This document shows positions 21,801-61,029 of a stretch of DNA of 64,000 nucleotides, piece by piece (position 1 is the first letter of the stretch; each line of letters starts with the position of its first letter). The position numbers and the translations under genes were made by a program. The notes beneath the pieces are model-generated. The model was not told the DNA's origin, ran no database searches, and was given only the letters and a program-made list of their open reading frames with translations. This DNA is from Macrostomum hystrix (lineage: Eukaryota > Animalia > Platyhelminthes). Where the stretch lies: positions 1,674,001-1,738,000 of the forward strand of contig CATNEN010000002.1 in assembly GCA_950097015.1 (NCBI GenBank). The letters are read 5' to 3'.

Positions 21801-24800
21801 TCTTCACCGTATCTGTCGGCAATCTGCCGCCCAGGTGCGCCGCTGTCATTAAAATTCGCTACGTCTGCGAGTTGAAGCCGTGCGGCGAGGCGGTGATCTT
21901 CTCGCTGCCCGGCAGCGCCGCGCCTTGGCAGACGGCAGCCGCAGCCGGAGACAAACTGCAGGCCGTCACGGACACAGCCGCCGTCCGGCGCCCCATTGGC
22001 TCATTTAGCCTTGAAGCCGGACTCCGAATGCCCTACCCAATCAGGGCGCTGGCTTCAGCCACGCATCAAATACAGGTGCGGAGACAGTAAGGGCTGGAGG
22101 TGGAGGTCGAGTGTCAGAGTTGGAGGTAGAGTGTCAGAGGTGGAGGCAGAGTGTCAGAGGTGGAGGCAGAGTGTCAGAGGTGGAGGTAGAGTGTCAGAGG
22201 TGGAGGTAGAGTGTCAGAGGTGGAGGTAGAGTGTCAGAGGTGGAGCTAGAGTGTCAGAGGTGGAGGTAGAGTGTCAGAGGTGGAGGTAGAGTGTCAGAGG
22301 TGGAGGTAGAGTGTCAGAGGTGGAGGTAGAGTGTCAGAGGTGGAGGCAGAGTGTCAGAGGTGGAGGTAGAGTGTCAGAGGTGGAGGCAGAGTGTCAGAGG
22401 TGGAGGTAGAGTGTCAGAGGTGGAGGTAGAGTGTCAGAGGTGGAGGTAGAGTGTCAGAGGTGGAGGCAGAGTGTCAGAGGTGGAGGTAGAGTGTCAGAGG
22501 TGGAGCTAGAGTGTCAGAGGTGAAGGTAGAGTGTCAGAGGTGGAGGTAGAGTGTCAGAGGTGAAGGTAGAGTGTCAGAGGTGGAGGTAGAGTGTCAGAGG
22601 TGGAGGTAGAGTGTCAGAGGTGGAGGTAGAGTGTCAGAGGTGGAGGTAGAGTGTCAGAGGTGGAGGTAGAGTGTCAGAGGTGGAGGCAGAGTGTCAGAGG
22701 TGGAGGTAGAGTGTCAGAGGTGGAGGTAGAGTGTCAGAGGTGGAGGTAGAGTGTCAGAGGTGGAGGTAGAGTGTCAGAGGTGGAGGTAGAGTGTCAGAGG
22801 TGGAGGTAGAGTGTCAGAGGTGGAGGTAGAGTGTCAGAGGTGGAGGCAGAGTGTCAGAGGTGGAGGTAGAGTGTCAGAGGTGGAGTCAGAGTGTCAGAGG
22901 TGGAGGTAGAGTGTCAGAGGTGGAGGTAGAGTGTCAGAGGTGGAGGTAGAGTGTCAGAGGTGGAGGTAGAGTGTCAGAGGTGGAGGTAGAGTGTCAGAGG
23001 TGGAGGCAGAGTATCAGAGGTGGAGGTAGAGTGTCAGTGGTGGAGGTAGAGTGTCAGAGGTGGAGTTAAAGTGTCAGAGGTGGAGTTAAAGTGTCAGAGG
23101 TGGAGGTAGAGTGTCAGAGGTGGAGTTAAAGTGTCAGAGGTGGGGTCGAGTGTCAGCTGGGACAGTAACTAAGGCACAATGCTCTCCAACAACTGAGCTC
23201 GCTGACGCCCGCAGGTGAAGCGCTCGGAGACCTGTGCAGTGGTCCGCCTGGCCCGCACACTTGAGCAACAGACTCTGGGCGAGCTCGGTTTCCGTCTCGA
23301 GGTGTCCCTGGCCGAGATCAACGCTCCCCGACTGTGGGTTGAGCGGCCTGACGAGTCGTTGAATTCCTCCGGACCCGACGCTCTGATGGTCTGCTTCTAT
23401 CCCGAGTTCGAATCGCAGCCGTCTGGATTGTCTACCGCCGAGTGCACAAGCGTGGTCACTCTACTGCTGGACTGCAGCAGGTCGATGGCCGGCGAGCCGA
23501 GTGTTGACGCCAGGAGGCTGGCTGCTCTGCTGCTGCGACGCCTGCCACCGAAAGTGCGCATCAATGTGGCCAGATTCGGCTCGCAGTTCCAGGACTGCTT
23601 TGCCCTGCCGCAGCCGTTGGCGAGGCGAGTGGCTGACTTCTGGTTTCTATTTTTTTCTAGGAAAACGTTTGATGCTTAGGCCTAATGAAAAATGAAAATG
23701 ATAATTGCTGCAGGCAATGGCACATCATTTGGTGACACTAGACCCGCAGTCAGCGAGGAGGCAATTCTGCCCATCTCGCTGACACCTGAGCACACAGTGA
23801 CACGCCCACACAGGTGTGTACATCTACCCGGGCCTTCTCATCGTCTGTCCTTTGTAGCAGTGTACACTCTCACTGTGCCTTGGAGGTTGGCCCTTAAGGG
23901 CGTAAATTGCACGACAAGCCCCCAAGCCTTCTCTCCGCGGCTGCACCCCAAATAATTGTAATCTTGAGCTCAAGGACCTCGAGCTCTCTGGTGCGAGAAG
24001 CAAACGCGTACCTCTCTGACACTAACCTCAACGCGTTATGGATGGCCATAGAATAGATTCTAGAAATTTAACTAGCAAATTCTAGGAAAACCGCTTTAAT
24101 AGTGCCGAGGGAAAATTATTATCGCTATAGTAGAAATAAACTATTTATGGATTTCTAATGGACAGTAAAAACTCATTTTTTTGTATGATTTTTATGTTTT
24201 CTAGGAATTGAACTTTTTTCCCCGAAAAACGGTTCGATGCTTTTCTAGGAAAGAATCTATTTGCATTCCAGTGAACCATTTATAATTTTCTTGGAAAGTT
24301 TCCGGCTTTTTTTCCGAAAAACGGTTCGATGCTTTTCTAGGAAAGAATCTATTTGCATTTCAGTGAACCATTTATAATTTTTTTAGAAAGTTTCCGGCTT
24401 TTTTTCCGAAAAACGGTTCGATGCTTTTCTAGGAAAGAATCTATTTGCATTCCAGTGAACGCTTTATAATTTTCTTGGAAGGTTTCCGGCTTTTTTCAGA
24501 AAATCATTCGACTGATTGTGATTTAGAAAACGGTTGAATTGTTTTACAGCAAATATCTGTTTGTATTCTTGGAAAGTATTTGGTGGTTTCTAGGAAAATT
24601 GACAGTTTTATTCCCGGGAAAAGTTGATGCTTTCCAGGAATTAGTCTGATTGTACTATTTGAAGCCGTGAGAGAATTTTCTAGGAAAGCTTCTGTTTGTT
24701 TTCCAGGTTTCTGGCTTTTTTAGAATATATAATAAAGTGTCTTGTTGAGTTGCGGGAAACAATTTAATACTTTTCTAGAAAATTCTTTTTTTTCTAAGAC

Positions 24801-27800
24801 CAAAGAAGTTTTACCAAACTCCGTATTTTTTTGGAATAAATGGGGTGCTGTACTGTTTTTAACGCGCTGTTTTGCTTGCCCAAATTGCTCACCTTCAGAA
24901 AAGCTGTCCAATCGCGCTGCTTAGAATTCATTCGCGCCTCCAGTCCAATAATGGGCGGCACCAATTTATCGGCCTACCTGTCCTACCTGGCCAGACTGCG
25001 CGAGTTCGGACCGCACGCCTTGCTAATCATCTCAGATGGTCACTACGAGGCTAAGGAGGCCGCTCTGGCTCTGGCTTCGACCGGCGCCAATAAACAGCTT
25101 CGCCTCCTGGCCTGCTCGGTGGGACCTTCGCCCGATCGGCACCGGCTTCGAGCCCTGGCCTCAGCGGCCGGCGCAGGAGGCTCCGTTGAATTCTTTGACC
25201 CAGCCCGACAATCTAGATGGCCTAGTCTAGCCGACGATCTAGTAGCCAGGCTGAACTCTCCGGCCCTGACTGACCTCAGCGTTGAATGGCATCTGGACGA
25301 GGACGATCGAAGCGAAGACGGTGGCAACGATTCGGCTGTTCGCCAAGCTCCGGCTTGCCCGTCGGCGCTTTTCAACGGCCAGCGGCTGATTGTGTACGGC
25401 CTGATGCCGCGCGAAGGTCGCGGCTGCCAGCGGGCGACGCTGCACGCCAAGGCTGGCGACTGCAGGATCAGCTGCACCGTCTTCACCAGCGAGCTGTGCT
25501 TCACCACCGGCTCACTGGTGCACGCCCTGGCTGCCAGGAGCCTCATTGCTGACTGGGAGGCCGGCAGTCTGGATACTGACCCAGCACTGCATCAGGTTTG
25601 GCGCAGCTTTTTGTGTCTTTTTTTCGTTTTTATGGTCTCTTTGTTTGATTGGTTGATGGCGTCTTTGATAGATTTTTATAGTCTTTGTTTGATTTACTTT
25701 GTTTGTTTGATTTGATTTAGTATCTTTGTTTCTATGATAGTGTCTATTTTTCGATTGTTTTACATTGTCTTTGTTTGATTGCTTGTTAGTGTCTTTGTTT
25801 GATTGCTTGATGGCGTCTTTGTTTGATTGTGTAATAGTGTCTTAGATTGATTGCTTGATACTGTCTTTGTTTCTATTTTTGGAAATAGCTTAGTTTTTTA
25901 TGAATGTCCTAAGTACATTTTTTCAAATTGTCTTTGGTAGTGTCTTTGTTTGTTTCTCTGATAGAGTCTTTGTTCGATTGCTTGATGTGTCTTTGTTTGT
26001 TTCTCTGATAGAGTCTTTGTTCGATTGTTTGATAGTGTCTTTGTTTGTTTCTCTGATAGAGTCTTTGTTCGATTGTTTGATGTGTCTTTGTTTGTTTCTC
26101 TGATAGAGTCTTTGTTCGATTGTTTGATGTGTCTTTGTTTGTTTCTCTGATAGAGTCTTTGTTCGATTGTTTGATAGTGTCTTTGTTTGTTTCTCTGATA
26201 GAGTCTTTGTTCGATTGTTTGATGTGTCTTTGTTTGTTTCTCTGATAGAGTCTTTGTTCGATTGTTTAATGTGTCTTTGTTTGTTTCTCTGATAGTGTCT
26301 TTCTTCGATTGTTTGATAGTGTCTTTGTTCTTCTATGTTTTTAACATTTCAAGAATCTGCTGAAATTTCAGATGAAGCGGTTGGAGCAGAAGGCGGATCT
26401 GGTTCAGCTGTCAATCCGCTATTCTGTGGCCTGCCAGTTCACCAGCTTTGTGGCCATAGAAGATCGGGAAAAGGACGAGAAGTTCGAGTCAGATCTGACA
26501 GCCAGACTGCGGAGTCTACTAGAGGAGGCGTCTGTTGACATCCTAACTAGCCAGGGCTGGGAGCCAGTCACTGGGGCCGAAGACGGTTTGGTGAGTTTGG
26601 TGACACCCCGACAAGAATCGTTGAATGTCTTGACGACGCCGATGTTTTGTGATCCTGGACGGTGTTTTTTTCGAATAGAGCGGAAAATTTTAGCCCATGT
26701 TCTGGATTTCTGGATTTCTTAGAAAGGCTCGAATCTGATCCTGTAGGCCAGCATTCGTGAGAAAATCGCGGACTCCATCATCGAAGGTCAGCGACTGTCC
26801 AACGCTGGCCGCGGCGAGGAGGCTCTTCGACTTTTCGACGACCTGAAGGCCTCACTATTGCTAGCTGGCATGCATGAGATGCACCCGGTGGCCCTGTCTG
26901 TTTCAGCCAATCAGAAGGCGGCTAAGATGCGATTTTCGGCCGCTAAGGGTAAGCTGAGCTTGTGTCTTCGTTTTTTTGCTTTAGCTCGTGTCTTTGTTCT
27001 ATGCTGCTTTGCACTGTGTCTTTGTTCTTTATTCAGTTTTAACTTGTGTCCTCGTGCTGTCTTATAGGTTTTTTGGTGTCTTTGTTCTGTTCTGCTTTTC
27101 CTTGTGACCTTGTTCTGTTCTGCTTTTCGTTGTGTCTTTGTTCTGTTCAGCTTTTCCTTGGGTCTTTGTTCTTTCTTTTTTATCTCGTTTCTTTGTTTTG
27201 TTTTTGCTTTTCAACCGTCTTTGTTCTATTACGCTTTAGCTTGTCTTTGTTCTGTAATGCTTTGGATTGTGTCTTTGTTCTGTTATGCTTTAGATTGTGT
27301 CTTTGTTCTGTTATGCTTTGGATTGTGTCTTTGTTCTTTCTTTTTTATCTCGTGTCTTTGTTTTGTTTTTGCTTTTTCAACCGTCTTTGTGTTATTACGC
27401 TTTAGCTTGTCTTTGTTCTGTTCTGCTTTGTATTGTGTCTTTGTTCTTTTATGCTTTGGCTTGTGTCTTTGTTGTGTTGTACACCAATATCCCACTATTA
27501 ACTGTCATCCTATCACAGCTCTTCCTGCGACATTCAGCGTCCAAGTGAAGACTCTGACAGGCAAGCGGTTTTCCGTTGACTTGAAGCCGGACTTAACAAT
27601 TGAGCACATGAAGCAGGCCATCATGATGAAAGAGGGCATTCCAATTGAGCAAATTAGGCTAGTAGCCAACGGTCAGCAGCTTGAGAACGATTGGACAGTG
27701 GCTGGCGCTGGACTCAGTCCCGGCTGCTCTGTAAGCATTGTGCTGCGCCTTCGAGGTGGCGAGCTGGAGCCGATGGCTGAGGAGAAACCACCTGCTGAGC

Positions 27801-30800
27801 CTCGCAAACAAACCAGCTCTCGAAAATTTGGGTCCAAAAAAAGTAAGTGATTCCAATCTGCAGTTGGTCTCATTTGGCATATGGCACTCTTTAGAATCTC
27901 TAATGACACTCTTTAGAATCTCTAATGACACTCTTTAGAATCTCTGATGACACTCTTTAGAATCTCTAATGACACTCTTTAGAATCTCTAATGACACTCT
28001 TTAGAATCTCTAATGACACTCTTTAGAATCTCTAATGACACTCTTTAGAATCTCTAATGACACTCTTTAGAATCTCTAATGACACTCTTTAGAATCTCTA
28101 ATGACACTCTTTAGAATCTCTAATGACACTCTTTAGAATCTCTAATGACACTCTTTAGAATCTCTAATGACACTCTTTAGAATCTCTAATGACACTCTTT
28201 AGAATCTCTAATGACACTCTTTAGAATCTCTAATGACACTCTTTAGAATCTCTAATGACACTCTTTAGAATCTCTAATGACACTCTTTAGAATCTCTAAT
28301 GACACTCTTTAGAATCTCTAATGGCACTCTTTAGAATCTCTGATGACACTCTTTAGAATCTCTGATGACACTCTTTAGAATATCTGATGGCACTCTTTAG
28401 AATATCTGATGGCACTCTTTAGAATATCTGATGGCACTCTTTAGAATCTCTGATGGCACTCTTTAGAATCTCTAATGGCACTCTTTAGAATCTCTAATGA
28501 CACTCTTTAGAATCTCTGATGACACTCTTTAGAATATCTGATGGCACTCTTTAGAATATCTGATGGCACTCTTTAGAATCTCTGATGGCACTCTTAAGAC
28601 TATCTGATGACACTCTAAAGACTATCTGATGGCACTCTTTAGAATATCTGATGACACTCTTAAGACTATCTGATGACACTCTTTAGAATCTCTGATGACA
28701 CTCTTAAGACTATCTGATGACACTCTTTAGAATATCTGATGATACTCTTTAGAATCTCTGATGACACTCTAAAGACTATCTGATGACACTCTTTAGAATC
28801 TCTGATGACACTCTTAAGACTATCTGATGACACTCTTAAGACTATCTGATGACACTCTTTAGAATCTCTGATGACACTCTTAAGACTATCTGATGACACT
28901 CTTTAGAATCTCTGATGACACTCTTAAGACTATCTGATGACACTCTTTAGAATCTCTGATGACACTCTTAAGACTATCTGATGACACTCTTTAGAATATC
29001 TGATGACACTCTTAAGACTATCTGATGACACTCTTTAGAATCTCTAATGGCACTCTTTAGAATCTCTAATGACACTCTTTAGAATCTCTAATGGCACTCT
29101 TTAGAATCTCTGATGACACTCTTAAGACTATCTGATGACACTCTTTAGAATCTCTGATGACACTCTTAAGACTATCTGATGACACTCTTTAGAATCTCTG
29201 ATGACACTCTTAAGACTATCTGATGACACTCTTTAGAATCTCTGATGACACTCTTAAGACTATCTGATGACACTCTTTAGAATATCTGATGACACTCTTA
29301 AGACTATCTGATGACACTCTTTAGAATATCTGATGACACTCTTAAGACTATCTGATGACACTCTTTAGAATCTCTAATGGCACTCTTTAGAATCTCTAAT
29401 GACACTCTTTAGAATCTCTAATGACACACTTTAAAAGATCTAATGGCACTGTTTAGAATCTCTTGTAGTACTTTTTAGACATTATAATGGTACTTTTCTA
29501 GTCTCTATTTGGACTCTTGAGTATCTGTTTTGAAGTTTTGATACCTTTATTGCCATCAATGTTAATTTTGAATCTGCAATTCCCAGGCTCAAAGCCGCGC
29601 TGGGATCCACCGAAGCCAGAATCGATGGCCTCCTCAGCCTTCGAAAGCGAGTCAATGGAATCCGCACTAATTGTGGACTCAGGCTCGCTTCTGACTAAAG
29701 CCGCTGTGATTTCTAACCAGTCAAATGCGGCTGTCACCCTGCCCTCTGTTGTGGGCCGGCCCAGGCATCAAGGCGTTATGGTCGGCATGGGACAGAAGGA
29801 TGCCTACGTTGGACATGAAGCTGCCGGAGTTACACTTGGCTGTTAGTCTTGTCACTTTCTTTTCACTTTGTAGCTTCTGTCTTGTCACTCATATCTTCCT
29901 GTACTGTCACTCATTAGTTCCTATCTTGTCACTCATTAGTTCCTATCTTGTCACTCATTAGTTCCTATCTTGTCACTCATTAGTTCCTATCTTGTCACTC
30001 ATTAGTTCCTATCTTGTCACTCATTAGTTCCTGTCTAGTCACTCATTAGTTCCCGTCTTGTCACTCATTAGTTCCTGTCTAGTCACTCATTAGTTCCCGT
30101 CTTGTCACTCATTAGCTCCCGTCTTGTCACTCATTAGTTCCTATCTTGTCACTCATTAGTTCCCGTCTTGTCACTCATTAGTTCCTATCTTGTCACTCAT
30201 TAGTTCCCGTCTTGTCACTCATTAGTTCCTATCTTGTCACTCATTAGTTCCTATCTTGTCACTCATTAGTTCCTATCTTGTCACTCATTAGTTCCTATCT
30301 TGTCACTCATTAGTTCCTATCTTGTCACTCATTAGTTCCTATCTTGTCAATCATTAGTTCCTATCTTGTCACTCATTAGTTCCTATCTTGTCACTCATTA
30401 GTTCCTATCTTGTCACTCATTAGTTCCTATCTTGTCACTCATTAGTTCCCGTCTTGTCACTCATTAGCTCCCGTCTTGTCACTCATTAGTTCCTATCTTG
30501 TCACTCATTAGTTCCTATCTTGTCAATCATTAGTTCCTATCTTGTCACTCATTAGTTCCTATCTTGTCACTCATTTGTTCCTGTCTAGTGACTCATTAGC
30601 TGCCGTCTTGTCACTCATTAGTTCCTATCTTGTCACTCATTAGTTCCTCTCTAGTCACTCATTAGTTCCTATCTTGTCACTCATTAGTTCCTATCTTGTC
30701 ACTCATTAGTTCCTATCTTGTCACTCATTAGTTCCTGTCTAGTCACTCATTAGCTCCCGTCTTGTCACTCATTAGTTCCTGTCTTGTCACTCATTAGTTC

Positions 30801-33800
30801 CTCTCTAGTCACTCATTAGCTCCCGTCTTGTCACTCATTAGTTCCTATCTTGTCACTCATTAGTTCCTATCTTGTCACTCATTAGTTCCTATCTTGTCAC
30901 TCATTAGTTCCTATCTTGTCACTCATTAGTTCCTATCTTGTCACTCATTAGTTCCTATCTTGTCAATCATTAGTTCCTATCTTGTCACTCATTAGTTCCT
31001 ATCTTGTCACTCATTAGTTCCTATCTTGTCACTCATTAGTTCCCGGATATGACTGAAACAGTATCCTATCGTTTCTACTAATAGTAGCACATGGCGAATT
31101 AATCTTCCTCCAAATATTTTCGCATACGAAAAAAAAGTTGGAAAATTTAGTAGAAAATTTCGAAAATGATGCAAACAATATTTCCAAATTTAAGAGCAAC
31201 TAGACATGTTAAAAGTGAAATAATATTTTTCTGCAACCATAAGTCACGTGTACTACACGAAAAGAAAAAAAACCGCGTAAAAAGTGATGTTTACAAAACC
31301 GTGCGCCCAGGCGGCGGGAGGCGTATAGCAAGGGCGTATAGGAAAATTACTATGCGCCCAGGCGGCGGGAGGCGTATAGCAAGGGCGTATAGGAAAATCA
31401 CTATGCGCCCCGGCGCCGGCTGGGCGTATAGCGGGGCGCACGGCGCCCCACTCTGCGCCCCAAAAAGCTGTCCCACCGGGTATCTTGTCACTCATTAGTT
31501 CCTATCTTGTCACTCATTAGTTCCTATCTTGTCACTCATTAGTTCCTATCTTGTCACTCATTAGTTCCTATCTTGTCACTCATTAGTTCCTATCTTGTCA
31601 CTCATTAGTTCCTGTCTTGTCAGTCATCTTGTCACTCCTTACTTCCTGTCTTGTCACTCCTTAATTCCTGTCTTGTCACTCATTGCTTCTCGTCTTGGCA
31701 CCATTCACTATCTACTACTTTGTTATCGCTCTAAGCCTTGTCGTTTATTTTTTTCATGCACATTTATTAATTATATATCTCTTTCAAATTTCAGCCGTTC
31801 GACTTGAGCCGCAAGATCCAATGGTGATGGCAACTCGCCTCGATAAAACTGAAGCCAAAAGCCAGGCCCAAGAAACAGAAAACGAAGAGGAAGATGAAGA
31901 AGAATGTTTCTTAGACGGTAAATCTTACGGCTTTTTTTAATTGAACTTGGCTTTAACTACTCTGTCACCCCACCAACTGCTGTCACTCCACTACCTGCTG
32001 TGTCACTCCACTACCTGCTGTGTCACTCCACTACCTGCTGTGTCACTCCACAACCTCCTCTGTCACCCCACCAACTGCTGTCACTCCACTACCTCTTCTG
32101 TCACTCCATTACCTGCTGTCACTCCATTACCTGCTGTGTCACCCCACTTCCTGCTGTGTCACTCCACTACCTGCTGTGTCACTCCACAACCTCCTCTGTC
32201 ACCCCACCAACTGCTGTCACTCCACTACCTCTTCTGTCACTCCATTACCTGCTGTCACTCCATTACCTGCTGTGTCACCCCACTTCCTGCTGTGTCACTC
32301 CACTACCTGCTGTGTCACTCCACAACCTCCTCTGTCACCCCACCAACTGCTGTCACTCCACTACCTCTTCTGTCACTCCATTACCTGCTGTCACTCCATT
32401 ACCTGCTGTGTCACCCCACTTCCTGCTGTGTCACTCCACTACCTGCTGTGTCACTCCACAACCTCCTCTGTCACCCCACCAACTGCTGTCACTCCACTAC
32501 CTCTTCTGTCACTCCATTACCTGCTGTCACTCCACTACCTGCTGTCACTCCATTACCTGCTGTGTCACTCCATTACCTGCTGTGTCACCCCACTTCCTGC
32601 TGTGTCACTCCACTACCTGCTGTGTCACTCCACTACCTGCTGTGTCACTCCACTACCTGCTGTGTCACTCCACTACCTGCTGTGTCACTCCACTTCCTGC
32701 TGTGTCACTCCACTACCTGCTGTGTCACTCCACTACCTGCTGTGTCACTCCACTTCCTGCTGTGTCACTCCACTACCTGCTGTGTCACTCCACTACCTGC
32801 TGTGTCACTCCACTTCCTGCTGTGTCACTCCACTACCTGCTGTGTCACTCCACTTCCTGCTGTGTCACTCCACTACCTGCTGTGTCACTCCACTTCCTGC
32901 TGTGTCACTCCACTTCCTGCTGTGTCACTCCACTTCCTGCTGTGTCACTCCACTACCTGCTGTGTCACTCCACTACCTGCAGACAGACTTATTAAACAGA
33001 ATGATACTCTGGAATATGCCATCTGTAATTTATAAAATTTATAAATAAATATATTTATAGATTTATTCTCAGCATCACCTGAAGAGTGCTCGATGCAAAT
33101 CGGTGCTTCATTTCGCAATGCGCAAAAAGCATGTAAGTTCCGAGCAAAAAAACATGAATGTAAATATAATTGAACTGAAGTATGCCATATTTGCGCTGTG
33201 CGTGATTAGCAACAGCTAGATATTATATTAGTACATTTTACAAGCTTGCACTCTTCACACTCACCTATTATTAGCGCCTGATCGGGGCTGGACTGCGGAT
33301 TCGCTGGTCTTTCAGCAGTGCGAAAGCGATGGTGAGAATCATTTTAGCCACGCTCTTCTTATCTTTAGTATTCCACTCCGCTACCACCTGTCCCTATCAC
33401 ACCTGTCCATTTCACACCTGTCCATTTCACACCTGTCCATTTCACACCTGTCCATTTCACACCTGTCCATTTCACACCTGTCCCTCTCACACCAGTCCCT
33501 CTCACACCAGTCCCTCTCACACCAGTCCCTCTCACACCTGTCCATTGCACACCAGCCCAGCTCTCACACCTGTCAATTTCACGCCTGTCAATTTCACACC
33601 TGTCAATTTCACACCTGTCCCTCTCAAACTAGTCCCTCTCACACCAGTACCTCTCACACCAGTCCCTCTCACACCTGTCCCTCTCACACCAGTCCCTCTC
33701 ACACCTGTACCTCTAACAACAGTCCCTCTCACACCAGTCCCTCTCACACCTGTCCATTTCACGCCTGTCCCTCTCACACCTGTCCATTTCACGCCTGTCA

Positions 33801-36800
33801 CCATCACACCTGTCCATTTCACGCCTGTCACCATCACACCTGTCCATTTCACGCCCGTCACCGTCACACCTGTCCATTTCACGCCTGTCACCATCACACC
33901 TGTCCATTTCACGCCCGTCACTATCACACCTGTCCATTTCACGCCTGTCACCGTCACACCTGTCCATTTCACGCCCGTCACCATTACACCTGTCCATTTC
34001 ACGCCTGTCACCATCACACCTGTCCATTTCACGCCCGTCACCATCACACCTGTCCATTTCACGCCCGTCACCATCACACCTGTCCATTTCACGCCCGTCA
34101 CCATCACACCTGTCCATTTCACGCCCGTCACCATCACACCTGTCCATTGCACACCAGTCTCTTTCACACCTGTCACTCTCACACCTGTCACTCTCACACC
34201 TGTCCCTCTCACACCTGTCCCTTTCACACCTGTCACCATCACACCTGTCCATTTCACGCCTGTCACCATCACACCTGTCCATTTCACGCCCGTCACCATC
34301 ACACCTGTCCATTTCACGCCCGTCACCATCACACCTGTCCATTTCACGCCCGTCACCATCACACCTGTCCATTGCACACCAGTCCCTGTCATACCTATCC
34401 CTCTCACACCTGTCCATTCCACGCCTGTCACAATCACACCTGTCCCTCTAACACCAGTCCCTCTCACACCAGTCTCTTTCACACCTGCCACTCTCACACC
34501 TGTCACTCTCACACCTGTCCCTCTCACACCTGTCCCTCTCAAACCAGTCCCTCTCACACCTGTCCCTCTCAAACCAGTCCCTCTCACACCTGTCCCTCTC
34601 ACACCTGTCCCTCTCACACCTGTCCCTCTCACACCTGTCCCTCTCACACCTGTCACTCTCACACCTGTACTGTCCACACCTGTCACTCTCACACCTGTCC
34701 CTCTCACACCTGTCCCTCTCACACCTGTCCCTCTCACACCTGTCCCTCTCACACCTGTCCCTCTCAAACCAGTCCCTCTCACACCTGTCCCTCTCACACC
34801 TGTCCCTCTCACACCTGTCCCTCTCACACCTGTCCCTCTCACACCTGTCCCTCTCACACCTGTCCCTCTCACACCTGTCCCTCTCACACCTGTCCCTCTC
34901 ACACCTGTCCCTCTCACACCTGTCACTCTCACACCTGTACTGTCCACACCATTCCAGACATAGCCTACTCTGCCTTGGATAAAGGACTAGAGGAGGACGG
35001 GTTTTTATACTCACTTGGACCCACCGATTGTGCTCAGGACTCAGAAGGCGAATGTGAGCTAAAATGATTTACTTGTTCGAGTTTCATCTTTAGTTTCTTC
35101 CTCACATTTTATTAGCAACCGATAAAAGTACATTGCACATTGCTTCAGATGATGCCGAAAGGAATGTTGAATCTGAAATATCACTCTCTGCGGGTGTCAA
35201 TCAAATGCAGTGTAAGCGTCAAGAATTGAATTCTTATTTTGTAGCTCAAATTATTTATATTTTTTTTCTATGCATTTCATATGCTTAGCAGTACTCCGAC
35301 TGACGTCGCCTAGGGCAGATTATGCACAACAAATGACTTGTTAGTTCGTGTTTAAACATTTTATTAACTACACACCGTTGTTTTCAGACTTTTAACGTAC
35401 CAGTAAGTATGTAGCCCATTGACAGAAAAGGTAGTGGAGTGACACAGCAGGTAGTGGAGTGACACAGCAGGTAGTGGAGTGACACAGCAGGTAGTGGAGT
35501 GACACAGCAGGTAGTGGACTGACGCAGTAATTAGTGGAGTGACAGAGTAGATAAAATGTAATATACTTGCTTTTTCAATGCTGCTGATTTATTATGCAAT
35601 CAAATGTGAACCACGCAAACTTCCAGTCCTGGATCAACCGAAGGGATCAATTTCCGTGGCCGCTGACGAACTTCAAAGCCAACCACGGGGTAATTTCGAA
35701 AACTTTTTTTTGAATTTTATTTTTTATTATCCTCACCTTTCTTTGAAATTCACTACCTGCTGTGTTACTCCACACCCTCTCTGTCACTCCACCACGTCCT
35801 CTGTCACTCCACTTCCTGCTGTGTCACTCCACTACCTGCTGTGTCACTCCACTAACTACTGCATCACTCCACTACCTGCTGTGTCACTCCACTAACTACT
35901 GCATCACTCCACTACCTGCTGTGTCACTCCACTAACTACTGCATCACTCCACTACCTGCTGTGTCACTCCACTAACTATTGCATCACTCCACTACCTGCT
36001 GTGTCACTCCACTAACTACTGCATCACTCCACTACCTGCTGTGTCACTCCACTACCTGCTGTGTCACTCCACTACCTGCTGTGTCACTCCACTACCTGCT
36101 GTGTCACTCCACTACCTGCTGTGTCACTCCACTACCTGCTGTGTCACTCCACTACCTGCTGTGTCACTCCACTACCTGCTGTGTCACTCCACTACCTGCT
36201 GTGTCACTCCACTACCTGCTGTGTCACTCCACTACCTGCTGTGTCACTCCACTACCTGCTGTGTCACTCCACTAACTACTGCGTCACTCCACTACCTGCT
36301 GTGTCACTCCACTAACTACTGCATCACTCCACTACCTGCTGTGTCACTCCACTAACTACTGCATCACTCCACTACCTGCTGTGTCACTCCACTACCTGCT
36401 GTGTCACTCCACTACCTGCTGTGTCACTCCACTACCTGCTGTGTCACTCCACTACCTGCTGTGTCACTCCACTACCTGCTGTGTCACTCCACTACCTGCT
36501 GTGTCACTCCACTACCTGCTGTGTCACTCCACTACCTGCTGCATCACTCCACTAACTACTGCATCACTCCACAACCTCCTCTGTCACTCCACAACCTCCT
36601 CTGTCACTCCACAACCTGCTCTGACACTCCACAACCTGCTCTGTCACTCCACGCACCCCTCCTTTCTTGGTGACAGGATTATTCGAGTCTAAAATGAAAA
36701 GCAAAAAGAAGGAAAGCAACTTGCTTGAGGCAGACAGCAGCTCTGGAGATTTCGAAGACTCAGAAGACTCAGACGACTCAGAAGACTCAGAAGACTCAGA

Positions 36801-39800
36801 CGATGTTTCTATCGAGATGCAGTCGAAAGTGTCAACTACGGCCTCACTTCCCGCTGCAGCTACACCTGCTCAGAGTTACAAAGCTAGATTATCTAGCGCT
36901 TGTGCAACAGATGTGGACACATCGCCCGTTTCATGGGGGTCAGCAGGTAAGGCAAAATCTTACTATTAAGTAGCTTCACTGCCTTCTCTATTTTTATGTG
37001 GGATTTCGTATAAGGAACCGTAAGGAATTTTTCACTACCGTATAATAAAGTACCTTAATCCATCAACTTTCTCCTCTAAAGAAATTATAATACCTGTGCG
37101 TCACGCGATTCTAACCGATTCATTTTAGCCCGAGATCGTGGAGACGATCGCAATGAAGACTTGAGAAAAATGATTGCGTCACGAGACAGGGACCGCGATC
37201 AGACCCGGAGTGAGTTCGCCTATCACCTGCCTTATCTCCACCCTCTACCACCTGCCTGCCTTATCTCCACCCTCTACCACCTGCCTGCCTTATCTCCACC
37301 CTCTACCACCTGCCTGCCTTATCTCCACCCTCTACCACCTGCCTGCCTTATCTCCACCCTCTACCACCTACCTGCCTTATCTCCACCCTCTACCACCTAC
37401 CTGCCTTATCTCCACCCTCTACCACCTACCTGCCTTATCTCCACCCTCTACCACCTGCCTGCCTTATCTCCACCCTCTACCACCTACCTGCCTTATCTCC
37501 ACCCTCTACCACCTACCTGCCTTATCTCCACCCTCTACCACCTTCCCCATCTCCACCCTCTACCACCTGCCTTATCTCCACCCTCTACCACCTGCCTTAT
37601 GTTCACCCTCTACTACCTTCCTCATCTCCACCCTCTACCACCTGCCTTATCTCCACCCTCTACCACCTGCCTTATCTCCACCCTCTACCACCCTCCACCC
37701 TCTACCACCTGCCTTATCTCCACCCTCTACTACCTTCCCCATCTCCACCCTCTACCACCTGCCTTATCTCCACCCTCTACTACCTTCCCCATCTCCACCC
37801 TCTACCACCTGCCTTATCTCCACCCTCTACCACCTGCCTTATCTCCACCCTCTACTACCTTCCTCATCTCCACCCTCTACCACCTGCCTCATCTCCACCC
37901 TTAAACGAACTGCTTAACCGTTTTTTACAATGCTTTCCTTTCAGATCGTCATCGATTTGCTAATTTATCTTCTTTCTCTGCTGCTGCTGCTTCGGCCTAT
38001 GCGGCTTCTGCTGATGCTGACGATTTTACTGAACCGCAAGCAAAGACTGTTAGTGCTGTCGGTTTGCTAATGAGGCGCAATATTGCACCGTCTATGTTAT
38101 CAGAGTGCTTCATCGCTACAGCGCCGCCGCCGCCGCCGCCGCCGCTGCTGCCGCCGGCGCCGACGCCGCTGCCGCCGCCGCAGCCGCAGCCGCAGCCGCA
38201 GCCGCAGCCGCAGACGCAGCCGCAGATGCAGATGTCAGCACCGCGGCTTGTACATCAATCAATGCCAAAAGCTACTGGCTTGTCGCTGCAGGAGGAGATG
38301 AGATTGAGAGCTCATTTTGGCGGCGCTCTCCCCAGACCTCCCCCGCCCGGGCTGGTCATATCAGCTCCTTCGAAAGCTCAACTTCTTCAGCAAACCATGT
38401 TGATGGGGCCTTCTTTTGAAGCTTTTAAAGGATCGGTAAAGTTTTCTGGACGAATTTCTAAGAATTCGTCCGTCTTTGGCAGCGCCGGCGGTGGCGGCGG
38501 CGGCGGCAGCGGCGGCGGTGGCGGCTTTGCAGTTGACAGCTTCGAACGGCGTGAAGAATCTTCGCTAGGCGATCTACTACTGCTGGACGTCCTGCCATTG
38601 AGCATCGGCGTCCAAACAGCCGGCGGTTTATTCCTGCCCATTGCGGACCGCAACAGCACAATACCCCTGCGTCGCCGCGTAGCCTTGTCGCCCTACTGGC
38701 CGGGTCAGGCCAGTCTGACGGCCGTCTTCAGCGAAGGCGAGAGTGTTCTGGCCTGCAACAACAGACCGCTGGCTAGACTGACTCTTCCCATCACTGCCGG
38801 CTGCGTTGCCCAAGTCTATGCGGGCGTGGAAATCGACTGTAACGGCCGCCTGGAGGTCGAACTGTCCCTAGACAGCGAATGGGATGTCGGTGACATTGTC
38901 AATGACTACGTGGGATCGTCCTCTAGCGGGCGATTTCGGCGACAGCGAATCGAAAATTCCGAACGACTATCCGCTGAATGCGTTGACCAAGCTGTAAGGC
39001 GAGGCGAGCGCGACAGACGCACATTCTACGCCTTCTGGCGCGATGTTCTCAACCGGCTGGCTGGAAGGCAGAACCTGGTGGCTGCCTGCTCTGAGGTACC
39101 TGACGGTGCCGAGCTCGACCAGCTGCTGTTCGGCTCCGAGCTGATTCGTGAGTCTCAGCACTAGCCAAATCAAATGTCTCTTTTTATCCTATCTGCACCG
39201 AGATACCATCACAATACTCCCAAATCTCATCCCTGATCCCATTTTAGTTATTCCCAATGAGAATGATTAACCCCTTATTCTCCCTTATCCATAAAAAAAT
39301 ACCAAATCTCATCCTTGATCCCATTTCATAAATCCCAAATCTCATTCCTGATCCCATTTCATAAATCCCAAATCTCATTCCTGATCCCATTTCATAAATC
39401 CCAAATCTCATCCCTGATCCCATTTCATAAATCCCAAATCTCATTCCTGATCCCATTTCATAAATCCCAAATCTCATTCCTGATCCCATTTCATAAATCC
39501 CAAATCTCATCCCTGATCCCATTTCGTAAATCCCAAATCTCATTCCTGATCCCATTTTAAATATCCCAAATCTCATTCCTGATCCCATTTTAAATATCCC
39601 AAATCTCATTTCCTGATCCCATTTCATAAATCCCAAATCTCATTCCTGAATCCATTTCATAAATCCCAAATCTCATCCCTGATCCCATTTCATAAATCCC
39701 AAATCTCATTCCTGATCCCATTTTACTGGTCCTAAATCTCATCCCTGATCCCATTTTAAATATCCCAAATCTCATCCTTCATCCCATTTCATTAATCTTA

Positions 39801-40412
39801 AATCTCATTCCTGATCCCATTTCATAAATCCCAAATCTCATTCCTGATCCCATTTTACTGGTCCTAAATCTCATCCCTGATCCCATTCAATCTAGATACC
39901 ATATTTGAGAATCTTAATTTAATAGTTGGTATTTGAGTTTCGCGATATAGAAATAGATAAATTATGTGACAATTTTTATCCTCCTTGCAGCTTTGCGTTT
40001 GAGTGTTTCGTCGGCCGTTTCGCCAGAACTTCAAAGCCTGTTTGACAGTCTCCGATCAGCCAATCGTATCGCTTGGACCACAGGCAATCTGTCAACTATT
40101 GGCATCCCGAATTTCATCTTCAACTGCTGGGAACGGCACCTGCTCACCAATGGGCTGGCCTCGCTAGGCCAGACGGTTGCTAGGGATGTGCTGGACATGC
40201 TGAGCACATGCCTGGCCTTGATGAGATTCTTCAACGAGCCAGCTAGCATTGTGCTTAACAAGTCCAACTCAGAAGCTGAGCAGGCTGGAGTAGCTGCTGC
40301 TCTAGTGTTTGTGCATGAAATTGTCAGCCAGCACTGCCACCTGTGCCGCTCTCTGGAACTCGGCAATCACTGGCCGGATTGGATTGACCAAATTGTCCAG
40401 TTGGTTCTGTAG
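1..40412 (+). CDS. PARP4: PARP4/vault-PARP-like gene, 28 predicted exons, about 2380 aa: join(<1..142,454..649,729..850,16039..16125,16200..16391,17658..17822,19111..19287,19718..20010,20627..21218,21572..22075,23215..23624,24899..25595,26372..26590,26747..26948,27519..27842,29587..29841,31795..31917,32983..33024,33073..33132,33275..33331,34958..35053,35116..35211,35289..35339,35627..35689,36677..36946,37129..37209,37945..39147,39991..40412)
   Basis: Every junction has AG/GT (one GC donor) with matching phases and no internal stop. Domain order and motifs match human PARP4 from BRCT to the terminal [10 protein letters not shown] (human CPRLELGNDW). The smallest exons (18-24) are less certain than the core. 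Confidence 0.9.
1736..2010. mobile_element. hAT-type MITE, 275 bp
   Basis: TIRs cagtggcagatccagg / cctatatctgcctctg (13 of 16 match) and a perfect 8-bp TSD tatacagt at 1728-1735 and 2011-2018. Confidence 0.9.
2163..2830 (-). pseudogene. C-terminal fragment of a Helitron PIF1-like helicase
   Basis: [63 protein letters not shown]; no N-terminal part. Confidence 0.93.
5550..7510. repeat. 23-bp satellite (aatcatggctaaaccagagtttg) in Helitron B; also about 3980-4400 and 10750-13710
   Basis: Directly visible tandem array with higher-order variants. Confidence 0.95.
7540..10065. repeat. 18-bp satellite (tcaactgggggatcattg) in Helitron B; also about 4420-4845 and 13735-15830
   Basis: Directly visible; it is the source of the LGDHCQ/NWGIIV ORFs. 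Confidence 0.95.
10166..15924 (+). mobile_element. Non-autonomous Helitron, copy C
   Basis: Starts TCTACTATACTAAAAATG after copy B's CTAG; ends with hairpin plus CTAG followed by T at 15925. Confidence 0.85.
16039..19287 (+). CDS. PARP4: PARP4 exons 4-7: WGR-like linker and helical regulatory domain
   Basis: [18 protein letters not shown]|[23 protein letters not shown] aligns with human VEMIWAEALGHL..ISLNDVSKAEGIL..MMTEFYRLI..KADLCQ. All junctions are phase 0. Confidence 0.85.
16500..17160. repeat. 26-bp minisatellite (atcttttgggattttagaatgacggt)
   Basis: Tandem array in PARP4 intron 5. Confidence 0.95.
17210..17575 (+). mobile_element. tRNA-derived SINE, full-length copy
   Basis: A-box gtggcagagcgg, B-box gttcgattcc and an (att)n tail; homologous copies elsewhere in the window. 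Confidence 0.85.
17950..19070. repeat. 31-bp minisatellite (caacgaaattctcatacctcacatcaaatat and variant)
   Basis: Tandem array in intron 6. Confidence 0.95.
19432..19572. repeat. Alternating 19+19-bp repeat (tactttaagagcttgcggg / tactttaggggtgtgcggg)
   Basis: Directly visible. Confidence 0.9.
19718..21218 (+). CDS. PARP4: PARP4 exons 8-9: ADP-ribosyltransferase catalytic domain and start of VIT
   Basis: [22 protein letters not shown]|[39 protein letters not shown] matches the PARP4 catalytic core, with the H-Y-E triad present. Confidence 0.95.
21255..21535. repeat. 33-bp minisatellite
   Basis: ctctacccctgctcagtgtgtccttcaggtgct repeats fill intron 9. Confidence 0.9.
21572..22075 (+). CDS. 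PARP4: PARP4 exon 10: VIT domain
   Basis: [51 protein letters not shown] matches the PARP4 VIT domain. Confidence 0.95.
22090..23155. repeat. 20-bp minisatellite (gtgtcagaggtggaggtaga)
   Basis: Tandem array in intron 10. Confidence 0.95.
23215..25595 (+). CDS. PARP4: PARP4 exons 11-12: vWA domain and following region
   Basis: MIDAS elements LDCSRSM, GGTN and ISDG are present, followed by [19 protein letters not shown] and [16 protein letters not shown] as in PARP4. The joining intron uses a GC donor at 23625. Confidence 0.93.
23697..24027 (-). mobile_element. Same SINE family, diverged copy
   Basis: Reverse complement shares gagagaaggcttgggggcttgtcgtg and ccaacctccaaggcacagtga with the 17210 copy. 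Confidence 0.85.
24220..24500. repeat. Tandem repeat of about 91 bp, 3 copies
   Basis: ccgaaaaacggttcgatgcttttctaggaaagaatc recurs three times. Confidence 0.85.
25610..26335. repeat. T/G-rich degenerate repeat (about 47-bp units)
   Basis: tgatagagtctttgttcgattgtttgatgtgtctttgtttgtttctc recurs; similar low-complexity sequence at 26970-27480. Confidence 0.85.
26372..26590 (+). CDS. PARP4: PARP4 exon 13: end of the conserved ITIH/MVP-interaction core
   Basis: [37 protein letters not shown] corresponds to human IIKLSKENSLITQFTSFVAVEKRD..KEDVDFLPYMSW. Confidence 0.92.
26747..26948 (+). CDS. PARP4 exon 14: helical TPR-like insert (phase 0-1)
   Basis: Open frame [60 protein letters not shown] between ctgtag and g|gtaagc. 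It resembles a kinesin-light-chain-type TPR. Confidence 0.7.
27519..27842 (+). CDS. PARP4 exon 15: ubiquitin-like domain (27533-27760) ending LRLRGG
   Basis: 33 of 76 residues identical to ubiquitin, colinear with no gaps (manual count). Acceptor tatcacag, donor a|gtaagt, phase 1-1. Confidence 0.92.
27880..29460. repeat. 22-bp minisatellite (gacactctttagaatctctaat)
   Basis: Fills the intron between the Ub and actin exons. Confidence 0.95.
29587..29841 (+). CDS. PARP4 exon 16: actin N-terminal fragment (about residues 1-58)
   Basis: [41 protein letters not shown] versus actin [41 protein letters not shown]. Acceptor ttcccag, donor t|gttagt, phase 1-1. Confidence 0.88.
29860..31690. repeat. 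22-bp minisatellite (ttgtcactcattagttcctatc), interrupted at 31042-31480
   Basis: Directly visible. Confidence 0.95.
31042..31480. mobile_element. Unclassified 439-bp insertion with CCCGG...CCGGG ends
   Basis: Unique sequence splitting the satellite, with internal GC-rich direct repeats of about 53 bp; no clear TSD. Confidence 0.5.
31795..37209 (+). CDS. PARP4 exons 17-26: ten small (42-270 nt) phase 1-1 exons encoding acidic, low-complexity sequence
   Basis: Each exon is stop-free in the continuing frame, has a length divisible by 3 and is flanked by AG/GT. No recognisable domain. Exon 18 (32983-33024) is the weakest. Confidence 0.7.
31960..32980. repeat. 20-bp minisatellite (tgtgtcactccactacctgc); also 35750-36655, and inverted at 35430-35547
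   Basis: Directly visible on both strands. Confidence 0.95.
33390..34945. repeat. 15-bp minisatellite (acacctgtccctctc and variants)
   Basis: Source of the 544-aa TPVPL ORF. Confidence 0.95.
37220..37900. repeat. 25/29-bp minisatellite (ccttatctccaccctctaccacctg)
   Basis: Tandem array in intron 26. Confidence 0.93.
37945..39147 (+). CDS. PARP4 exon 27: Pro/Gln- and Gly-rich tracts followed by an HSP70 linker and substrate-binding domain (about 38571-39090)
   Basis: [59 protein letters not shown] versus HSC70 [59 protein letters not shown]. Acceptor ctttcag, donor c|gtgagt. Confidence 0.9.
39220..39890. repeat. 33-bp minisatellite (ccaaatctcattcctgatcccatttcataaatc)
   Basis: Tandem array in the last PARP4 intron. 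Confidence 0.93.
39991..40412 (+). CDS. PARP4: PARP4 terminal exon: conserved C-terminal domain
   Basis: [47 protein letters not shown] versus human FLKQKGIQSLGVKGRECLLDLIATMLVL..ICPRLELGNDWDSATKQLL. Phase-1 acceptor ccttgcag. Confidence 0.88.
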
Positions 40413-40564
40413 ATTCAACTGACCCATTATTTGACACTATTTTTTTATTCAGTAACTTTTTATAGCAAATAGACAGTTTGTAATAGCAAGCAAAACATCG
40501 ACTCTAACTTTCGTTGAAAAATGTCTGGACAAAATATGTCTGGGAAGTGCGGAGAGATAAATAT

Positions 40565-41730
40565 ACTGTTAGACATCCAACTATAAACTGTAAGACATCT
40601 AGATATAAACTGTTAGACATCTAGATATAAACTGTTAGACATCTAGATATAAACTGTTAGACATCTAGATATAAACTGTTAGACATCTAGATATAAACTG
40701 TTAGATATCTAGGTAACAACTGTTAGACATATAGATATAAACTGTAAGACATCTAGATATAGTCTGTTAGATATCTAGGTAACAACTGTTAGACATCTAG
40801 ATATAAACTGTTAGACATCTAGATATAAACTGTTAGACATCCAACTATAAACTGTAAGACATCTAGATATAAACTGTTAGACATCTAGATATAAACTGTT
40901 AGACATCTAGATATAAACTGTTAGACATCTAGATATAAACTGTTAGACATCTAGATATAAACTGTTAGACATCTAGATATAAACTGTTAGACATCTAGAT
41001 ATAAACTGTTAGATATCTAGGTAACAACTGTTAGACATATAGATATAAACTGTAAGACATCTAGATATAGTCTGTTAGATATCTAGATATAAACTGTAAG
41101 ACATCTAGATATAGTCTGTTAGATATCTAGGTAACAACTGTTAGACATCTAGATATAAACTGTTAGACATCTAGATATAAACTGTTAGATGTCTAGATAT
41201 AAACTGTTAGACATCTAGATATAAACTGTTAGACATCTAGATATAGTCTGTTAGATATCTAGGTAACAACTGTTAGACATCTAGATATAAACTGTTAGAC
41301 ATCTAGATATAAACTGTTAGATGTCTAGATATAAACTGTTAGACATCTAGATATAAACTGTTAGACATCTAGATACCAACTGTTAGACATCTAGATATAA
41401 ACTGTTAGACATCTAGATATAAACTGTTAAACATCTAGATATAAACTGTTAGACATCTAGATATAAACTGTTAGATGTCTAAATATAAACTGTTAGACAT
41501 CTAGATACAAACTGTTAGACATCTAGATATAAACTGTTAGACATCTAGATATAAACTGTTAAACATCTAGATATAAACTGTTAGACATCTAGATATAAAC
41601 TGTTAGACATCTAGATATAAACTGTTAGACATCTAGATACAAACTGTTAGACATCTAGATATAATCTGTTAGACATCTAGATACAAACTGTTAGACATCT
41701 AGATACAAACTGTTAGACATCTAGCTATGA
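40565..41730. repeat. 22-bp minisatellite (agacatctagatataaactgtt)
   Basis: Tandem array; each unit contains the palindrome atctagat. Confidence 0.95.
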
Positions 41731-42214
41731 ATTGTTAGAAAATTTTGTCCAAGACATTGTCAATCAAGGCGTTTTGTATTTTAAGTATTGACAAAAAAAT
41801 CTTAATTTTTTACTACTTACTAACCATCCATATTTATCCGAGGTATTTTATTGACTTTCAATCAACCCAAATGAAAATAGCGAACGTTTTCTATTCTCTC
41901 GTTTTTATTGATTGATTATCCAACAGCAAATAGCTAGTGTTTGCCGAGTGTTCAGCTCCTCTGTTTGACTAACATTTATTTACTCTGACTGACTGCATAT
42001 TTTATAGACATGCAGAAACGTTTTTATTCAGTTTATGAAGCACAAAAAAATTAATAAATTATATCTATTTACTATTCAGAAAAAAATTATCACAATCCAC
42101 AGATTTCATACTTGAGTTTTTTGAGTCTCAGTTAACTCATGTCATATAGCCTTGCTTAACTTTTTAGCTTGCTTGAATTAGGAACTAGCCTGCTTCGATT
42201 CTAATTCTGAAATC

Positions 42215-59900: not shown

Positions 59901-61029
59901 TAGCGAGGAGGCGGCTGGCTTTGATCCGGGACACGGCAGGAGAATGTGGCCTGGAGCTGGATGTGTCGCTGGTGCCTTCCTCGATAAACAAGGCAGACGC
60001 GCTGACGCGAGTACCACAGCAGTGGCTGCGCCAGCGGCCTTTGTGTGCAGTAGCGCTACACCCTATCGACTCGGATCTCCGTGCGTGCCACGAGAAGCAT
60101 CACTTCGGCGTGGACAGGACGCTCTACCTGGCCAAACTGTGCCTCCCCGGGCGTGAGGTACTACGCGAAGAGGTCGAGCGCGTCGTGGCGAACTGCATCC
60201 GTTGCAAATCCGTGGACCCTGCGCCGGTAAATTGGGACCATGGAAGTCTCGAGGTGGACGCAAACTGGTGGCGTTTGGCCTGCGACGTGACCCACTTCAA
60301 GGACGACCGCTATCTGTCGATTGTTGACTGCAGGCCGAGTAGATTTGCACTGTGGCGAAAACCCCCAGACGAGCGGACAGCTTTGATCATAGGGACACTC
60401 GTGCAAGTCTTCCGAGAGCGGGGCCCTCCCTGGCAGCTGCTTCTGGACAACTCGGTGACCTTCCGCTCTGCCGAGGTGCGTGCATTCTGCGAAGCATGGG
60501 AAGTGCAGTTCCTCTTCCGCTGCGCTCACCGGCCGTCGGGCAACGGGATAGTCGAGCGAAATCATCGGACGATCAAGCGGATAGCATCCAAAACCGGCAA
60601 AGACGTGCTGGACATGGTATTCTGGTACAACATGGCTCCGAAGGATGGTACTCGGGAGTGCAGCGTGCCCAGCAGAATGCTCAGCACTTATGACTGGAAA
60701 CCGCCCATGTTGTCTCTCCCCGAGGCCACTGAGACACCGGAGTCAAACCCTGCCCTGCCGGTCGGAACGGAAGTGTTCGTCAAGCCGCCGGCCGTCAGGT
60801 GTACCGACGAGTTGCCAAGGGGGCGCGTGACAGGCCAGAGACAAGGGGCTACCGTGGAGGTCGATGGACTTCCCCGTCACATTGCTGACGTCCGGCCGGC
60901 CCCAGGCTCGCAACCACAGCCGCCTGGAGTAGAGCGAGCCGTTGAGCGGAACGGCGAACCCCGGCGGTCAAGTCGCGAACCAGTCCGCTACGAAGCTTAA
61001 TCTCTTTTGATCTTGAGATCAGGGAGAAA
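59900..61029 (+). mobile_element. Ty3/Gypsy LTR retrotransposon 3' part: RNase H end, integrase and PPT
   Basis: RRRLALI..VPSSINKADALTR; HHCC (CHEKHH..CIRC); D-D-E (CDVTHF, LLDNS, VERNHRT); LPVGTEVFVK; PPT agggagaaa at 61021-61029. Confidence 0.92.

Follow-up and report, generated by a model that had tools for sequence, protein, structure and literature searches.

The 64,000 nucleotides of the Macrostomum hystrix genome analysed here (contig CATNEN010000002.1; hereafter the window, whose positions serve as coordinates throughout) carry a gene for PARP4, or vault PARP, on the + strand, together with exons that encode pieces of ubiquitin, actin and HSP70. We read the locus as the single PARP4 gene of a macrostomid flatworm with these modules in its variable middle, where they would serve as docking sites; to this reading as a whole we assign a rough probability of 0.55. 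The enzyme core is readily recognised. The PARP catalytic domain occupies two open segments (19682-20074 and 20493-21251) that match Pfam PF00644 with E values of 7.6e-08 and 1.2e-12, and the PARP exon aligns with residues 448-641 of human PARP4 (E 5.6e-24). Tyr and Glu of the active site fall opposite their human counterparts (GIYFADS vs GIYFSDS and DREFAVF vs DDEFVVY) and the catalytic His, read off the open frame, is present in LLFHASS, as expected from an early claim of an intact H-Y-E triad. A VIT domain follows at 21530-22087 (PF08487, E 2.5e-32), and then a vWA domain divided between the open segments 23206-23676 and 24840-25595, its final exon running to 25595 ahead of a GT. Pfam profile matches of the vWA segments are weak and under the cut-off (E 2.8e-4 and 2.4e-3); the vWA exon nevertheless finds human PARP4 residues 921-1155 at E 8.6e-31 and nothing else in the solved-structure library. 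The final exon of the conserved core, 26372-26590, resembles human PARP4 residues 1150-1212 (E 0.0012) and includes the motif QFTSFVA. With PARP, VIT, vWA and post-vWA exon all matching, and with human PARP4 rather than ITIH or VWA5A as the best solved structure for the VIT-vWA succession, the identification of the flanking core as PARP4 stands. Far upstream, the open segment 448-687 may hold half of a BRCT domain in an N-terminal PARP4 exon; it has no Pfam match and shows solely a weak similarity to a TopBP1 BRCT (E 0.5). In the 220-Mb assembly of 42 contigs that was searched, PARP4 is single-copy and genes for the major vault protein are present at two loci.

Downstream of the core lies a helical linker exon at 26747-26948 (+ strand, phase 0 to 1), spliced on both sides in all four RNA runs described below; it had been labelled TPR-like, a label that a Pfam search, which returned no family, does not support. 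The next exon, 27519-27842 (phase 1-1), encodes a ubiquitin-like domain whose fold spans 27539-27760. It scores 58.6 bits against PF00240 (cut-off 25.4; E 5.4e-16) over profile positions 1-72 of 72, is ~43% identical to the ubiquitins of the same genome and has its LRLRGG tail inside the protein, ending at 27760 with Glu as the next residue. The actin exon, 29587-29841 (phase 1-1, donor GTTAGT), is actin-like from 29664, contains the D-loop segment at 29742-29822 and encodes actin residues ~5-68. A 78-amino-acid query from this exon retrieved many solved actins at E 5e-15 over actin residues ~5-60; its Pfam Actin score of 15.4 bits stays below the cut-off of 27 because the exon is a fragment. 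Instead of the complete four-subdomain actin ATPase fold, residues ~5-68 only are present, and the region of the first phosphate-binding loop has diverged. The largest exon, 37945-39147 (401 codons, phase 1-1), begins with a low-complexity half in which ~200 Pro/Gly-rich residues precede an HSP70 part. From 38571 this part consists of the interdomain linker DLLLLD, the beta-sandwich and a diverged lid; it matches PF00012 at E 3e-10 and solved HSP70 substrate-binding domains at E 2e-15, and is ~34% identical to the ordinary HSP70 genes of the genome. PF00012 is covered at profile positions 380-483 of 599 only and the upstream half of the exon is of low complexity, leaving no HSP70 nucleotide-binding domain. 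All three pieces were thus found where the preliminary description had placed them, with open frames, canonical splice sites and the reading frame kept, and every verified module exon (ubiquitin-like, actin, HSP70) is of phase 1-1. None of them can do the work of ubiquitin, actin or a chaperone. In the interval from the actin to the HSP70 exon, a strict scan found five small candidate exons and a lenient one five more; splice sites and open frame predict an acidic linker exon at 31795-31917 and an acidic, Ser-rich one at 36677-36946, both + strand and phase 1-1. Other candidate exons lie at 31197-31283, 33073-33132, 33275-33331, 34958-35053, 35116-35211, 35289-35339, 35627-35689 and 37129-37209. 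The terminal exon, 39991-40412 on the same strand, has a phase-1 acceptor and encodes a helical domain of 140 amino acids followed by a stop; the same junction is present in gene models of Macrostomum lignano.

The union of the core with the first modules can be observed in RNA. Four runs (X5-X8), representing four samples of a single study, each comprise ~45-48 Mb of contigs, as would suit a transcriptome, and their contigs were aligned to the repeat-free part of the locus at 26330-27880. Every run yielded one spliced contig of 5996-6077 bases that covers 26368-26589, 26746-26947 and 27518-27843 with zero differences from the window and with joints at 26590->26747 and 26948->27519, both GT..AG. 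The contig carries a further 4051 bases ahead of this stretch and 1195-1276 bases past the ubiquitin-like exon. The 30 letters ahead of 26368 have a unique match in the window at 25562-25591, the end of the vWA exon, and the 30 letters behind 27843 have a unique match at 29588, where the actin exon starts. These spliced contigs, with their loose ends placed at 25562 and 29588, show that in all four samples a single messenger RNA (mRNA) joins the PARP4 core to the helical exon, the ubiquitin-like domain and the actin fragment. The sole contig seen in each of the four runs takes in both the ubiquitin-like and the actin exon.

These data also dispose of much of the concern that the arrangement is an artefact, either a chimeric assembly or a set of chance open frames that are never expressed. 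In favour of the idea, the region is full of minisatellites able to mislead assemblers; against it, independent RNA contigs of four samples match the exons exactly and use the predicted splice sites, and the 3' part of the locus is syntenic in M. lignano. Since the contigs match without difference, a chimera is refuted for 25562-29617, and an artefact is very improbable for the locus at large. The architecture is real and, as far as the literature search reached, undescribed: among the results listed, no paper was found on PARP4 of Macrostomum or of flatworms, or on PARP4 as an integrated decoy, which agrees with the initial impression of novelty.

Beyond the actin exon, there is good reason to expect that the same mRNA runs via small acidic exons into the HSP70 exon and then into the terminal exon. 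Runs X5-X8 hold 0.60-0.72 of the sampled words from 38300-40412, a stretch whose exonic share is 0.60. No stop interrupts the 401 codons of the HSP70 exon, its acceptor is a polypyrimidine AG, and no start codon lies near its 5' end. Its phase-1 donor at 39147 fits the acceptor at 39991, a Pro codon being completed across the junction, and the M. lignano models P0001, P0023 and P0024 join HSP70 and terminal domains at the same Pro junction. M. lignano models are also the closest database proteins, at 41-44% identity. Model P0023 continues into an MFS transporter that lies downstream in the window as well (53841-55120), which makes the locus syntenic and P0023 an over-fusion, most likely a read-through annotation error. 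P0023 and P0024 share a local frame disruption and a seven-residue gap within the HSP70 domain; we do not read these as decay, errors of assembly or gene model being equally likely. The UniProt names of the M. lignano fragments, 'DUF4524 domain-containing' and 'RING-type domain-containing', were not reproduced with Pfam. Runs X1-X4, from two other organisms, hold ~9% of the sampled 31-letter words of 38300-40412 and could be from close relatives sharing a conserved piece.

Several observations weigh against a single gene of this extent. The RNA data come from one study, and contigs hide minor isoforms. The contigs end between ~43 bases before the HSP70 exon and ~530 bases inside it, depending on which small exons are real, and those aligned to 26330-27880 show no junction into 37945 or from 39147 to 39991. 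The terminal exon returned a single M. lignano model from a phmmer search of 1.84 billion representative proteins, and compared with human PARP4 by sequence and by a two-sequence profile against the solved-structure library it gave nothing significant. The structural comparison of its model with the human domain by VIA-align (Z 4.0) falls inside the background of helical bundles. Lastly, no ortholog of the ubiquitin-like or actin modules was retrieved elsewhere, the ubiquitin-like search having been length-filtered and hence uninformative.

Such observations leave room for two transcription units, of which the first, PARP4 with its ubiquitin-like and actin pieces, would end in the small-exon region, and the second, with the HSP70 and terminal exons, would be separate and possibly trans-spliced. 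This arrangement would account for the missing junction into 37945, for a terminal exon undetectable as PARP4-like by sequence and for the M. lignano models with these exons, which are separate fragments of 314-802 amino acids without PARP domains. Those fragments, however, start within upstream exons and lack a Met, and the HSP70 exon itself is open over 401 codons in phase 1-1, with an acceptor present and no nearby start codon. The PARP4 contigs moreover reach 941-1022 bases beyond the actin exon, with a difference of 81 bases between runs in where they stop, a spread that is expected where assembly breaks off in GC-rich, low-complexity sequence but not at a poly(A) site. A PARP4 without its vault-binding end would also be unusual, and a Foldseek search places the human counterpart of that end first for the terminal exon. 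Taken together, two units appear rather unlikely. The single-gene reading is demonstrated by RNA as far as the helical, ubiquitin-like and actin exons are concerned, and the HSP70 exon probably belongs to the gene as well; the original argument from a conserved LELGNHW terminus contributes little to it.

The terminal exon had been presented as a recognisably conserved PARP4 domain, a view to which neither the phmmer search nor the comparisons with human PARP4 lent support. Its structure is more suggestive. The human MINT domain (residues 1562-1724) is a bundle of at least eight helices (PMC12280208), and the AlphaFold 2 (AF2) model of the flatworm domain, of low confidence at a pLDDT of 48.8, is all-helical with ~8 helices. 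In the Foldseek search of this model, rank 1 among 350,542 chains was 9bw6_B, human PARP4 MINT, at a non-significant E of 1.5; the alignment has a TM score of 0.40 and 25% identity over 91 columns and is colinear, pairing model residues 1-126 with human residues 1578-1693. An Atlas search for look-alikes of the terminal domain gave just generic helical-repeat leads, all below 0.9. The domain encoded by the terminal exon is a likely candidate for a diverged vault-binding MINT domain.

Nonsynonymous and synonymous change (dN and dS) was estimated by NG86 for the D-loop segment (27 codons, 29742-29822) and for the N-terminal segment formed by the preceding 24 codons of the actin piece. The D-loop segment shares 24 of 27 amino acids with actin at a dN of 0.07-0.09 and a saturated dS. 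Its third positions match any host actin at 10-15 of 27, vs 16-23 of 27 among the host actin paralogs, and recent gene conversion from an actin gene was rejected on these counts. In the N-terminal segment 9-10 of 24 amino acids match and dN is ~0.7 (Fisher p 0.0008). Judged by these substitutions, the D-loop is under strong purifying selection and the N-terminal half of the actin piece has decayed. In the HSP70 module, 58 of the first 80 residues (72%) are the same as in M. lignano P0001, against 41% for the whole alignment; the upstream linkers cannot be aligned with M. lignano, and the neighbouring MFS gene is 78-79% identical. Several HSP70 residues common to both flatworms differ from canonical HSP70, which points to a pocket that was kept but altered.

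These patterns bear directly on the view that the modules are neutral exonised debris, that is, retrocopy fragments that landed in the long introns of a tolerant linker and were spliced in without acquiring a function. The decayed N-terminal half of the actin piece (9-10 of 24 residues, dN ~0.7) is what such debris would look like, no piece amounts to a complete working protein, and symmetric phase-1 exons can be inserted without harm. Debris would hardly retain a D-loop dN of 0.07-0.09 beside saturated synonymous sites, or an HSP70 sandwich that is 72% conserved across two species with unalignable flanks. Nor would frames be expected to stay open over 85, 108 and 401 codons despite identities of ~43% and ~34% to the donors, or the exons to be retained in the sole contig that each of the four runs yielded. 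We consider debris distinctly improbable; at least the actin and HSP70 pieces have been kept by selection.

The origin of the modules can be addressed by comparison with the donor genes in the same genome. All eight actin genes found there (L020-L027) have one GT-AG intron of 91-420 bases right after codon Q41, a position inside the D-loop, across which the PARP4 actin exon is continuous; the N-terminal protein sequences of the eight are nearly invariant. Two of these genes, L020 and L021, which lie on contigs C10 and C41, could not be told apart in the compared segment. Because the codon 41/42 intron of all eight host actins is missing, the actin piece was probably captured from a complementary DNA (cDNA) copy of spliced mRNA; the module ends near residue 68, where actin has no exon boundary. 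Few mRNAs are as abundant as those of ubiquitin, actin and HSP70. With donors so abundant and an actin piece that looks like cDNA, capture may simply track transcript abundance, and the choice of donors may reflect this as much as any selective logic. At only ~43% (ubiquitin) and ~34% (HSP70) identity to the ordinary genes, the modules are old captures and not fresh copies. Each is single-copy in its own genome, and a search for further copies of the cassette or of PARP4 there found none. In the mechanism that we favour, the variable linker would correspond to the rapidly evolving disordered region of vertebrate PARP4 encoded by exon 30 and would have grown through the shuffling of symmetric phase-1 exons, with a spliced mRNA copy as the source of at least the actin piece, a route that would favour abundant transcripts as donors.

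What the modules do can be approached through what has been preserved. Selection would seem to keep single surfaces, namely the actin D-loop, the peptide-binding sandwich of HSP70 and a ubiquitin fold with its LRLRGG tail, and these surfaces most likely serve as mimic docking sites. Docking would bring host or pathogen proteins that recognise such surfaces to the ADP-ribosyltransferase and to the vault. Docking by mimicry would be the most economical mechanism.

A more specific proposal, which goes back to the preliminary description, is that the modules are integrated decoys or tripwires: baits copied from the targets of pathogen effectors. Cleavage at LRLRGG, or binding or modification of the D-loop or of the HSP70 domain, would then switch or release the ADP-ribosyltransferase on the vault. 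In such a bait array LRLRGG might sense microbial deubiquitinase-type proteases, the D-loop copy might sense toxins or effectors that grasp or modify this loop, and the HSP70 domain might sense factors that hijack HSP70, each hit cutting or re-positioning the enzyme and starting ADP-ribosylation. Precedents among animals are found in NLRP1 (PMC7857732, PMC13037943). In vertebrate PARP4 the corresponding region, disordered and encoded by exon 30, shows recurrent positive selection, which has been read as direct contact with pathogen factors (PMC4038475) and bears out the background given for human PARP4 at the outset. In the flatworm the integrated domains are host-derived, with clear homology to ubiquitin, actin and HSP70; precisely the D-loop and the LRLRGG tail are preserved and not the whole folds; and this part of the gene evolves fast, at 41-44% identity between species vs 78-79% in the MFS neighbour. 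Yet being frequent targets of toxins and effectors is only one reason why these three proteins might recur; mRNA abundance and cDNA capture explain the choice of donors equally well, and the altered HSP70 pocket is more in keeping with a new specificity than with faithful mimicry. The genome has one PARP4 and an undiversified cassette, unlike many receptor families engaged in arms races, and nothing observed at the locus points to immune regulation, an effector or cleavage. Constraint on the D-loop and on the HSP70 sandwich fits baits, and equally any role in binding a partner. A decoy function is thus a tentative proposal with the odds well against it; if true, the bait array would represent an animal, non-NLR, enzyme-coupled form of integrated-decoy immunity and would give the vault a concrete function.

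The value of the locus under the broader docking mechanism does not depend on immunity. To our knowledge, the function of PARP4 and that of the vault are not established, and the best clue on PARP4 is that its disordered linker in vertebrates evolves as though it touched pathogen proteins. Here the linker carries what appear to be copies, kept by selection, of three binding surfaces that are well understood; the flatworm genus is tractable in the laboratory, and the questions become testable: which proteins bind the D-loop copy, the orphan HSP70 pocket and the internal ubiquitin tail, and whether those proteins are ADP-ribosylated or loaded into vaults. The locus also offers a clean case of intracellular domain accretion, in which a cDNA-derived fragment would have entered as a phase-1 exon and selection would then have acted on one loop.

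Nearly all introns in the 3' half of PARP4 are filled by a minisatellite of their own, with units of 15-33 bases in up to ~100 copies. The arrays lie at 25735-26329, 27881-29463, 29880-31043, 31963-32980 and 33385-34938, and further ones at 35751-36652, 37220-37901, 39297-39887 and 40561-41739; the core TGTCACTC is common to several of the units. Short RNA contigs (42-682 bases, depths 3-54) match 31-40 bases of the intron at 26614-26709 with 1-2 mismatches and are unlike it on both flanks; an expressed repeat at another place in the genome is their probable source. In the long 5' introns of PARP4 an open frame of ~48 codons recurs at least four times (6440-7519, 13576-13719), a pattern that marks it as a repeat, dispersed or tandem. 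The open segment 47563-48105, which lies between the PARP4 and MFS genes, encodes a galactose-binding or F5/8 type C-like lectin domain (PF22633, E 1.1e-06), and 59732-60997 is a 422-codon open frame with a retroelement integrase core (PF00665, E 3e-08).

Among known systems, the closest relative is human PARP4 itself (PDB 9bw6, 9bw7, 11jf), with the same order of PARP (H-Y-E), VIT, vWA and post-vWA segment and, in both, a long variable region ahead of a small helical C-terminal domain. The two differ in how that region is built, since in the human gene it is a Pro/Ser-rich disordered stretch encoded by one exon (PMC4038475) whereas in the flatworm it comprises many phase-1 exons with three modules; between the human MINT and the flatworm terminal domain there is no significant sequence match. 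Decoy and tripwire sensors, such as plant NLR-ID proteins and mammalian NLRP1 and NLRP1B (PMC7857732, PMC13037943), likewise place mimics of host proteins in the fast-evolving linker of a larger protein. Flatworm PARP4 has no NLR or death-fold output, so the likeness is architectural only; its output would be ADP-ribosylation or vault association, unlike that of the NLR sensors.

Turning to the individual modules, natural ubiquitin fusions (the ubiquitin-actin fusions of chlorarachniophytes, PMC6332867; UBA52; RPS27A) also set an LRLRGG-ended fold directly upstream of another polypeptide, and in the chlorarachniophyte case the next module is actin, as it is here. In those fusions a near-identical ubiquitin is N-terminal and is cleaved to free a complete partner, whereas the flatworm domain is internal and ~43% identical, with ~50 residues between ubiquitin-like and actin-like sequence and with actin reduced to a 65-residue fragment. 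With HSP70/DnaK the flatworm module aligns along its length through the DLLLLD linker and the beta-sandwich (E 2e-15). It differs in lacking the nucleotide-binding domain and in a diverged lid, and thus in having no ATP-driven chaperone cycle by itself, and also in strand residues shared by the two flatworms that deviate from the canonical ones. Classical phase 1-1 exon shuffling concerns extracellular domains. The flatworm module exons are 1-1 as well, and the absence of the host intron from the actin module recalls the exonisation of retrocopies; what departs from the classical pattern is that the donors are intracellular housekeeping proteins and that fragments smaller than a domain have been kept.

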